64,000 nt of DNA from Podarcis melisellensis. Taxonomy: Eukaryota. The position numbers and the translations under genes are program-made. The notes under the pieces were generated by a model. That model ran no database searches, was not told the DNA's origin, and was given only the letters and a program-made list of their open reading frames with translations. The stretch lies in the NCBI GenBank assembly GCA_964234715.1, contig OZ174277.1, one strand, 5' to 3'. Shown in pieces: positions 56,390 through 58,623 of this stretch; position 1 is the stretch's first letter; each line of letters begins with the position of its first letter.

Positions 56390-56581
56390 CTAAGCTTGAT
56401 TTGTGCCTTGATCACATGAGAGAAGTGCTTGGAAAGTCTGTGCCTGAGAAAGTGATGGTGGAAGCAGTATTGAGCAGTAAATTTGATCTACAACAAGCTT
56501 TGGATTCTTTACTTGCCCAAGACAATAAGCAAAATAAGATCAAGAATGAGGATGCCGTAATTGCAGGGAAGGCAACAAAAG
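56390..56581 (+). CDS. HBS1L: HBS1L coding exon 4 (192 nt, HBS1 N-terminal helical domain)
   Basis: ttttaag|CTAAGCTTGAT...ACAAAAG|gtatgt = (A)KLDLCLDHMREVLGKSVPEKVMVEAVLSSKFDLQQALDSLLAQD...GKATK(G); phase 1-1. Confidence 0.96.
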
Positions 56582-57130
56582 GTATGTTTACGTTTAATTT
56601 TTGTGTGATTTACTATGTGGCTCTTTTGCATAAGGGGCAGCTCTATAGGAAGTTTTTTGCTTCTTTTTACTATTTCTGTTTGTTAATAACTTAAATGACT
56701 AAGCTACATATATAGAGGCATCCTGTGATGAATGCTTAACGTACTGTTAATCTGTAGTCTTCCAAGGATCTGTAAATATTATTAGCACTATATGTTGCAC
56801 TAAATAATTTGAACTAAAATTATATCATGTAATGGTTAATTTATAAATTTGATGCAGATTGTGTAATTAGAGAGATAGTATTGAAAAACGTGCATATTCT
56901 AGCTTAGTAGTGCTAAATTTCAACTGCAGAGTTGTCTATTTAGCATAGTAAATGGAATTCATGAGGCTGTGATTTACACATCTAATACAGTTTTGATAAT
57001 GTTTGTTAATTAAATGCCTTTCTGTGTTTTTTTCTATTTTGCTGTTGGCTTTCCTGCTTTGCCACAAATTGGAACTGTTTTTGCTTTGACCCTGTGTCTC
57101 TCTTGGAATTGTTGGCTCTTGTAAGGTAAG

Positions 57131-58623
57131 GCTTATTTTGCTCAGAAATATTTTCTAGCACTAACAACTTGACTAACTCCATTGAAAATACTTTAGATAC
57201 CACTAAGTCCTGCTGTAGTCTCAGCAACCCTGTGGTCAATTTTGAATCTTGTAACGCTTCAGCTCCAGGTGACAAAACAGTCTTCAGACCCAAATATGTC
57301 AAAACACCTTCAGTAAAAAAGAAAAAATCCGTTTGTAACTCCTCGGGAGCTCTTCCTATACCATTCAGTGACAATGATAAGTCACTTTATAAACCACTGA
57401 ACAAGCAGGTAACACTCCCACCAACTGACAGCACCAGCACAAGTTGGAAATCTTGCAATGAAAGTGATGCATGCTTTAGTTCAGAGGCTGAATTGCTGAA
57501 GGAAAATTCTTCAGAAAATGGGTCTTGGAACCCATCTGAATTTAAAGGAGTTGACTTGAAGGGCCTGGTCAGGCTTAACGAAACGGGTGATTCAGCAGAT
57601 GCCCAAGATAGTGCATTAATTTTTCTCCAGAAAAACTATGATAGCGAAAGCTGTTTGGATAATCCTCCTGGTTTTATAAATGCTTTTGGAAATTTGATGC
57701 TGGACAGCAAGAGAAGTTACCAGCTCAGTAAAAAGGCCGAACTATCTGGAAATGCCCCTTCATTTTCACACAGTAAGGGCAGCTTCCAAGGGCATATCAG
57801 CACCTCTTCAGAAGCGAATAGCTTAACATTTTCAGTGTCTCAAAGCCCATCACTGGCTGATCTCCTACAGGAACACCAAGGAAGTAATTCAAGCAAGCCT
57901 CAATCCTTATCTGATCTTTGCAACCCATCAGCAGGTTTCACAGACTTGGAATTAGGACTTTCACCATTGTCCCAACTAGCCAACCAACCTCAAATTTCAC
58001 CTGGAATGACAGAACTGTCAGGATCTCTATCTTCCTTAACATTCTCCAAGTCTTCTCCAGTAAAAGAGCTTGAGAGTTTATCACTTTCAGATTTAATTGC
58101 AAAATCAACTGCATTGGATAAGCCTCGAACAACAAGCAGCTGTTCTGAGCTTCGTATACCTAAAACAGTGCAACCTACAGTTGTGAATTCAGATATTGAT
58201 CTAAGTGTTCTTATTAGAAAATCAACATTATCTCCTCAACATGTACATGTACAATCAGGCACTTCACTTCCAGAAAAAGACGCTTTATTTTCAAAGCAAG
58301 GACGGCAAATGTTTGTAGCTAAAGGAAGGAAGAAGAACCAAAAGAAAATGAGGTCACATATTTTGGAAGGCACTTTTCCATGGGCAAAGGCCCTCTCTGC
58401 AACACCATCAGCCTTTGCTATAACTCTCTGTCTTCATTATCCCCCAAAGAGATGTAAGCGCCAAACAGTTAATCTTCACAAGGCTTTCTTATACAGTAGG
58501 CAAATGCAAGAAGTAAAAATTAATGAAACTGGACCCTTATTAGCAATAACACCTTTTGACTTCAAATCGCCATCTCCAGATGACATTGTAAAATTAGGCC
58601 AAAAGAAAGCCTTCACTAGATAA
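57131..58623 (+). CDS. HBS1L: HBS1L alternative terminal exon (5a) encoding the SKI7-like isoform HBS1LV3/HBS1L3 (exosome/SKI adaptor); whole isoform about 641 aa
   Basis: Long Ser-rich open frame ending ...WAKALSATPSAFAITLCLHYP...HKAFLYSRQMQEVK...ITPFDFKSPSPDDIVKLGQKKAFTR*, matching the HBS1LV3 C-terminus. In-frame acceptors at 57129-57130 (exon start 57131, gives KGLFCSE, like human KGVLFSS) or 57144-57145 (start 57146). The exact 5' boundary is uncertain. Confidence 0.93.

Follow-up and report, generated by a model that had tools for sequence, protein, structure and literature searches.

SKI7 alone, to our knowledge, physically links the SKI helicase complex to the cytoplasmic exosome; defects of SKI2 and SKI3 cause trichohepatoenteric syndrome. 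Current structures explain one short helix of its 175-residue SKI-binding region. The HBS1L locus of the lizard Podarcis melisellensis raises the question of what the rest of this disordered arm does, because an earlier note made from the DNA sequence had described there a periodic array of six short (S/P/D)LxxL motifs and proposed that it is a multivalent docking platform. Where do these motifs come from, and what might they bind? We followed up the array in the window, that is, the whole stretch of 64,000 nucleotides of contig OZ174277.1 (assembly GCA_964234715.1) in which the locus was analysed. Positions are those of the window; residue 1 of the exon protein is at 57160.

The array lies in an alternative exon whose use is documented by spliced contigs from three runs (X1, X3 and X9) of related lacertids. 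These contigs join 56581 to 57131 and excise 56582–57130 whole, as one GT..AG intron. The donor GT is at 56582–56583; the acceptor in use is the AG at 57129–57130, at the end of a GTAAG string, and the exon begins with GC. The contigs span the entire exon, with a 3' untranslated region that reaches at least 59350. A further run, X19, contained 0.98 of the words sampled from the window; the splice joints are those of X1, X3 and X9. The joint is in frame and the frame is open from 57133. Spliced contigs and the in-frame junction together therefore establish that the SKI7 exon is used and that it starts at 57131. In all three runs, some contigs lead from 56581/56582 to the canonical downstream exon rather than to 57131. 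Contig word depth was 34–285 for the shared exon and the canonical junction versus 12.6–34 for the SKI7 exon, which fits SKI7 being the minor isoform, contig depth being a poor measure of abundance.

The exon alone served as the query in all searches. Its nearest named protein is HBS1L isoform X3 of Podarcis raffonei (98% identity), and it is 91% identical to a Lacerta agilis isoform. A Pfam scan of the exon protein returned no family match; PF08938 lies upstream in the orthologs. The arrangement is that of SKI7 (HBS1L3), in which the shared HBS1_N exons are joined to an alternative exon, and two further features of this isoform are present, are invariant or nearly so, and align to 9g8m_E. At 57637–57639, where the N-terminal part of the exon is poorly conserved, related lacertids carry an in-frame 6-nt insertion; within the array they differ at, among other places, 58027 and 58080 (both synonymous) and 57904, where residue 1 of motif 2 changes from Ser to Pro. 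The features of the locus are collected in Table 1.

Table 1. Features of the HBS1L/SKI7 locus, in window coordinates.
Feature	Position	Strand	Basis or remark
Upstream HBS1L exon, end of HBS1_N region, common to both isoforms	56390..56581	+	Sequence, frame, contigs of three runs
SKI7-specific alternative exon, coding part to TAA stop	57131..58623	+	Spliced contigs, open frame, homology
Equivalent of human SKI7-SKI region 372–546, holding the whole array	57841..58365	+	Alignment to 9g8r_E and 9g8m_E; boundaries from PMC11540850
Motif 1 with flanks, SPSLADLLQEH (hexamer SLADLL at 57850)	57844..57876	+	Archetypal S-L-A-D-L-x-x-x-H copy; sequence and conservation
Motif 2, SLSDLC	57904..57921	+	Conserved in amniotes only
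Motif 3, PLSQLA	57964..57981	+	Fish form SLSQLASEH, archetype-like
Motif 4, SLSSLT	58024..58041	+	Invariant S-L-S-S-L in 39 amniotes
Motif 5, SLSDLI	58081..58098	+	Inside the equivalent of human SKI3-docking helix 451–464 (58075..58116)
Motif 6, DLSVLI	58198..58215	+	Invariant Ile just before; conserved down to ray-finned fishes
Exosome-binding end (SKI7-EXO equivalent), including ATPSAFAITL and PFDFKSPSPDDIV, downstream of the array	58390..58620	+	9g8m_E alignment; PMC11540850, PMC5389692

Six motifs within the SKI-binding region

The six hexamers stand exactly where the earlier note had placed them, and their spacings of 18, 20, 20, 19 and 39 residues can be read directly from the sequence. 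Between exon residues 226 and 396, [SPD]LxxL occurs six times against 0.99 expected in composition-preserving shuffles, an enrichment of ~6-fold (P ~1.5e-4). The best period of the six motifs is 19.5 residues with a resultant of 0.989, which random placement matches in 2–4 of 10,000 trials (P ~3e-4); both P values are optimistic, since the motif was defined after being seen. The claim that the period has no counterpart in the DNA also holds, as neither a tandem nor a direct repeat was found under the array within the window.

Alignment of the exon protein to human SKI7 chains in the PDB (E 5e-72) places the array in a structural context. Chain E of 9g8m-p aligns to residues 226–487 and chain E of 9g8r to 227–396, the latter being the array itself; chain positions equal the human residue number minus 364, an offset checked on the published PFDF at 609. 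The human hexamers that the earlier note gave for comparison (SLTELF, TLSDLC, PLSQLA, SLSSLA, SLSELI and DLSVLI) are all present in the human chain. Human and lizard share the exon, the order of the six motifs, the contact residues of motif 5 and the exosome-binding end downstream.

According to Kögel et al. (2024, PMC11540850; PDB 9G8R, 9G8M-P), human residues 372–546 form the fragment that binds SKI238. This construct begins two residues ahead of motif 1 and includes all six motifs. Helix 451–464 docks to the convex side of SKI3, where the TPR29/TPR30 cleft receives Leu454 and Ile458, and an L454D/I458D mutant, which was enough to affect binding in pull-downs, served to validate the docking model (PMC11540850). 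In S-L-S-E-L-I, the human motif 5, the first Leu is Leu454 and the Ile is Ile458; they correspond to L309 and I313 of the lizard protein. As judged by alignment, motif 5 is the published SKI3-docking helix. In an AlphaFold2 monomer model the lizard region is disordered, with a mean pLDDT of 48; motif 5 carries the one helix that the model places in the array.

Because the array is the equivalent of 372–546 and motif 5 carries L454/I458, at least one partner of the array is identified, namely the SKI complex. The earlier note had mapped the known exosome and SKI contacts downstream of the array and had proposed that it couples decay to a partner still to be identified or to condensates; no result pointed to condensates. 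A downstream position is right for the exosome and for SKI2 RecA1, which contacts human residues 555–632 (PMC11540850), but not for SKI3, since 372–546 is the array. The proposal of conserved short docking elements on a disordered arm is supported, and a platform of several motifs describes the array fairly, but SKI3 was already known as a partner. Another partner for motifs 1, 3, 4 and 6 is possible.

What the published work assigns to the region is confined to two helices. The cryo-EM map contains a single SKI7 helix on SKI3, and a second helix predicted by AlphaFold-Multimer, H1, within human 430–465, made no substantial contribution (PMC11540850). Motif 4 is probably H1, being the sole candidate upstream of H2 in 430–465. 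Fragment 267–386, which contains motif 1, was tested too, but only 372–546 is reported as a SKI238 binder; the accessible text describes neither a periodic array nor a repeat family and gives no role to motifs 1, 3 and 6 (PMC11540850).

Conservation singles out the motifs as a group. Mean identity is 0.88 in the hexamers versus 0.63 in the spacers among 39 amniotes (permutation P 5e-5), and 0.78 versus 0.44 across jawed vertebrates (the same amniotes with echidna, six frogs, axolotl, caecilian, lungfish, coelacanth, gar, sturgeon, tarpon and elephant shark). Motifs no better conserved than spacers in amniotes and fish had been named in advance as evidence against a docking role; the opposite is found. 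The N-terminal part of the exon is poorly conserved, as the earlier note had stated, its mean column identity being 0.47–0.49, as against 0.70 across the array and 0.82 at the exosome-binding end.

The individual motifs differ in their histories. Motifs 4, 5 and 6 are invariant or nearly so in the 39 amniotes, including columns S289–L293 of motif 4 and S308, L309, D311, L312, I313 and A314 of motif 5. The most conserved element of the array is motif 1 with its flanks, which reads SPSLADLIQEH (SPSLADLLQEH in this lizard): its identity among non-amniotes is 0.96 versus 0.81 for motif 5, and all seven ray-finned fishes examined (six teleosts and bowfin) keep it intact, motifs 4 and 5 being variable in them. 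Motif 6 takes the form DLSxLM in teleosts. At 0.43 among non-amniotes, motif 2 is at spacer level, and it is lost also in some mammals and lizards. Each vertebrate motif has conserved flanks of its own, which distinct binding sites fit better than interchangeable copies do. A 632-residue mammalian cluster representative (P0121), which may be a primate, was counted in one motif listing and otherwise left out.

A repeat family beyond vertebrates

A profile of the array and the exosome-binding end, searched against 1.8 billion representative proteins, found many SKI7-like proteins outside vertebrates. Between HBS1_N and an end resembling Patch 4, these proteins carry strings of S-L-[AS]-x-L-[AI], mostly followed by x-x-H. 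Molluscs with 5–13 copies include Mya arenaria, Ruditapes philippinarum, Mercenaria mercenaria, Ylistrum balloti, Patella caerulea and Octopus bimaculoides; the richest arrays are on other eukaryotic contigs, and copy number in the family ranges from 3 to 13. The motif is enriched in 82 of the 109 SKI7-like representatives, these being the ones with the SPDD end (shuffle P <= 0.01; median 3 copies versus 0.14 expected), and 27 representatives have six or more copies. His occupies position 9 in 51% of 448 family instances even though it lies outside the search pattern, and Ser at position 1 is nearly invariant.

The length of the repeating unit depends on the lineage, with periods of 14 residues in venerid clams and of 16, 17, 19, 24–26 and 35 residues elsewhere. 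Under the arrays of two relatives the DNA itself is a tandem repeat, of 51 nt in 14.7 copies (89% match) and of 57 nt in 4.5 copies (93%); at one of these two loci an HBS1_N exon is directly upstream.

The vertebrate motifs resemble the family consensus to different degrees. Motif 1 has all of it, including His9; motif 5 is without His9, and motif 6 is only a loose fit. Anamniotes have additional copies upstream, such as SLSELI and SLADLI. A 22-column profile built from non-amniote instances only and run on human 9g8r_E gave positive scores to motifs 1, 3, 4 and 5, with motif 1 best (9.8 bits) and motif 5 second (7.9 bits); over the whole database its E-value is not significant, which is to be expected of a profile this short. 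Unit-against-unit profile comparisons of pairs 1-5, 3-5, 5-6 and 1-3 gave in-register P values of 2e-5 to 1e-3, which carry little weight, as motif-centred windows are partly circular and several controls overlap neighbours. Judged by sequence, the six motifs appear to be copies that have diverged from an old animal repeat, S-L-A/S-x-L-A/I-x-x-H.

Other approaches contributed less. A hydrophobic-moment scan did not single out the motifs, and when the 22-column profile was run against solved structures, yeast Ski7 was not among the matches, all of which had E >= 0.2. One of them, Xrn1 (PDB 3pie_A 756–769), contains G-I-S-L-S-D-L-A-K-R-H, the full consensus including His9, at E 1.1; this match is probably due to chance.

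In the limited literature searched, neither the motif strings nor any account of SKI7 as multivalent or repetitive turned up in a relevant context, and Kalisiak et al. and the zebrafish study confine their discussion to two C-terminal motifs. The main functional element of the array, the SKI3-docking helix, is already published. New with respect to the literature searched are the repeat family, its variable copy number, the lineage-specific periods of its copies, with two arrays still tandem in the DNA, and the top conservation of motif 1, an advance that is modest but real.

Possible roles of the copies

With slightly better than even confidence, we read the array as the lizard ortholog of the SKI-complex-binding arm of SKI7: a disordered string of short leucine docking motifs that arose by tandem duplication of S-L-[AS]-x-L-[AI]-x-x-H, in which motif 5 is the main anchor and the other copies make weaker contacts. 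By homology to the published human work, motif 5 would form a short helix upon binding and insert its first Leu and its Ile into the TPR29/TPR30 cleft of SKI3. Motifs 1, 3, 4 and 6 would engage neighbouring grooves of the SKI3 superhelix, or other surfaces of SKI2N-SKI3-SKI8, in a weaker and dynamic manner. Since the map contains one helix, the contribution of H1 is not substantial and mutation of L454/I458 is enough to affect binding, contacts of the motifs other than 5 should be weak, state-dependent or directed elsewhere. Two further observations weigh against this reading: fragment 267–386, with motif 1, is not reported as a SKI238 binder, and the vertebrate motifs each have flanks of their own. 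Weak contacts could raise avidity and capture radius, which would keep SKI238 attached to the exosome-bound end of SKI7 as the helicase opens and acts on the ribosome.

Yeast offers a precedent for several helices on one SKI3. The N-terminal helices H1–H3 of yeast Ski7 bind the convex face of Ski3 at TPR20–29 (Keidel et al., 2023, PMC10659929; PDB 8QCB); like the human motif 5, they are short elements of a disordered arm, each of which places two hydrophobic residues into inter- or intra-repeat pockets of Ski3. In contrast to the array, they are located at the opposite end of the protein, and the binding residues are not conserved between yeast and higher eukaryotes, according to the human study (PMC11540850). 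Yeast Ski7 is nevertheless a closer precedent than Dcp2, with which the array had originally been compared. The N-terminus of the yeast protein begins with an S-L-L-E-Q-L-A-like string, which would fit the published Leu4 and Ile12. The helical leucine-rich motifs of Dcp2 are repeated short leucine-rich helices in the disordered tail of an mRNA-decay factor, and they bind Edc3 and Pat1; they differ from SKI7 in consensus and in their receptor, an LSm domain rather than a TPR groove, and the likeness is one of analogy. The same applies to the LD motifs of paxillin, Leu/Asp-rich amphipathic helices along a disordered region that dock on helical-bundle surfaces: protein and partners are unrelated to SKI7.

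The array could be read differently. Motif 5 alone might serve SKI3, with the other copies, above all motif 1, docking a partner that is missing from the published reconstitutions, such as another surface of the ribosome-bound assembly or an accessory factor of the SKI pathway like FOCAD-AVEN. This reading, which we regard as tentative, draws on the better conservation of motif 1 than of motif 5 among non-amniotes and in ray-finned fishes, on the His9 that motif 5 is missing, and on the human data, in which the published map shows a single helix and a fragment with motif 1 only is not reported to bind (PMC11540850). Against it, motif 5 ranks second on the family profile, which makes it appear to belong to that family rather than to be a separate invention, and the yeast precedent of several helices on one Ski3 argues against a separate partner. 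A related proposal is possible, if doubtful: S-L-[AS]-x-L-[AI]-x-x-H may be a new short linear motif class of animal SKI7, varied from 3 to 13 copies by tandem duplication, in which motif 1 would be the recognition element for a site or partner that current structures lack. A third component, or a specific state of the ribosome-bound complex, would thereby be linked to SKI238 and the exosome. The even spacing might itself be functional, as a molecular ruler that sets successive helices into successive TPR grooves of SKI3. Amniote spacings (18, 20–21, 20 and 19) are nearly without indels, and the 3-4-5 spacing of 20 and then 18–19 residues is kept in most jawed vertebrates. Yet the array accumulates 1.65 indel events per 100 residues, a value between those of the N-terminal part (4.3) and of the motif-free linker after the array (0.6), and is thus not specially protected; motifs 5 and 6 lie 37–39 residues apart in birds, reptiles and therian mammals, 35 apart in echidna and 30–42 apart in other vertebrates, and the periods of other lineages run from 14 to 35. 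A ruler is therefore improbable. As indel density is not special to the array, the 5-6 distance varies and other periods differ, the 19–20 residue period is most simply explained as left over from tandem duplication, and extra constraint on spacing is not seen; on the reading that we favour, it would be a relic of the length of the duplicated unit and not a ruler under selection.

Two other accounts carry still less credence. The motifs might be mainly regulatory, acting, for example, as export signals of the leucine-rich type or through phosphorylation of a Ser that stands three positions ahead of Asp/Glu; the sequence pattern S-x-x-D/E does occur in motifs 1, 2 and 5, with the nearly invariant Ser1, but position 4 is acidic in only about half of the 448 family instances, and in our view the hydrophobic pattern does not fit the usual four-residue export signal, which makes this account highly unlikely. 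That the pattern is a functionless by-product of Ser/Leu-rich disorder we consider scarcely credible. Ser and Leu are indeed the two commonest residues of the exon and the motif was defined post hoc, but shuffled sequences contain about one copy rather than six, motif columns are far more conserved than spacers over more than 400 million years, and one copy has a function that is structurally solved (PMC11540850).

If the published helix is one copy of an old repeat whose copy number has drifted between animal lineages, and a different copy is the most conserved, the disordered arm breaks down into testable sites, which matter for the strength of SKI238 binding, for the state in which SKI238 is held and for the possible recruitment of something else. 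Motif 1 (SPSLADLIQEH) has the top conservation in vertebrates and is explained by no structure.

Other elements in and around the array

The exon contains several further short elements. Additional LxxL sequences adjoin two of the motifs, GLSPL (57955) next to motif 3 and ELESL (58066) next to motif 5. A 14-nt near-repeat, 58096–58109 and 58213–58226, is separated by 117 nt; it gives motif 5 of this lizard the sequence L-I-A-K-S-T and motif 6 the sequence L-I-R-K-S-T, a likeness after the Ile that is missing from most other vertebrates.

Anamniotes have a conserved element, approximately (E/D)LFGSLxSVLQ, 21–29 residues upstream of motif 1 (P0126, P0134, P0135 and P0136). It is weaker in turtles and degenerate in squamates, including the window at 57742–57780 (ELSGNAPSFSHS). 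Salmonid SKI7 orthologs (P0303, P0311, P0337 and P0146) are named NAC subunit alpha muscle-specific form-like, mucin-1-like and proline-rich protein 36-like; these names look like errors caused by low-complexity sequence.

A seventh [SPD]LxxL match, DLKGL(V), is located at 57553–57570, ~100 residues upstream of the array. Across the 39 amniotes D132 and L133 never vary and K129 and K134 hardly ever do, in a stretch that is otherwise poorly conserved, and DLKGLV may be a further docking motif.
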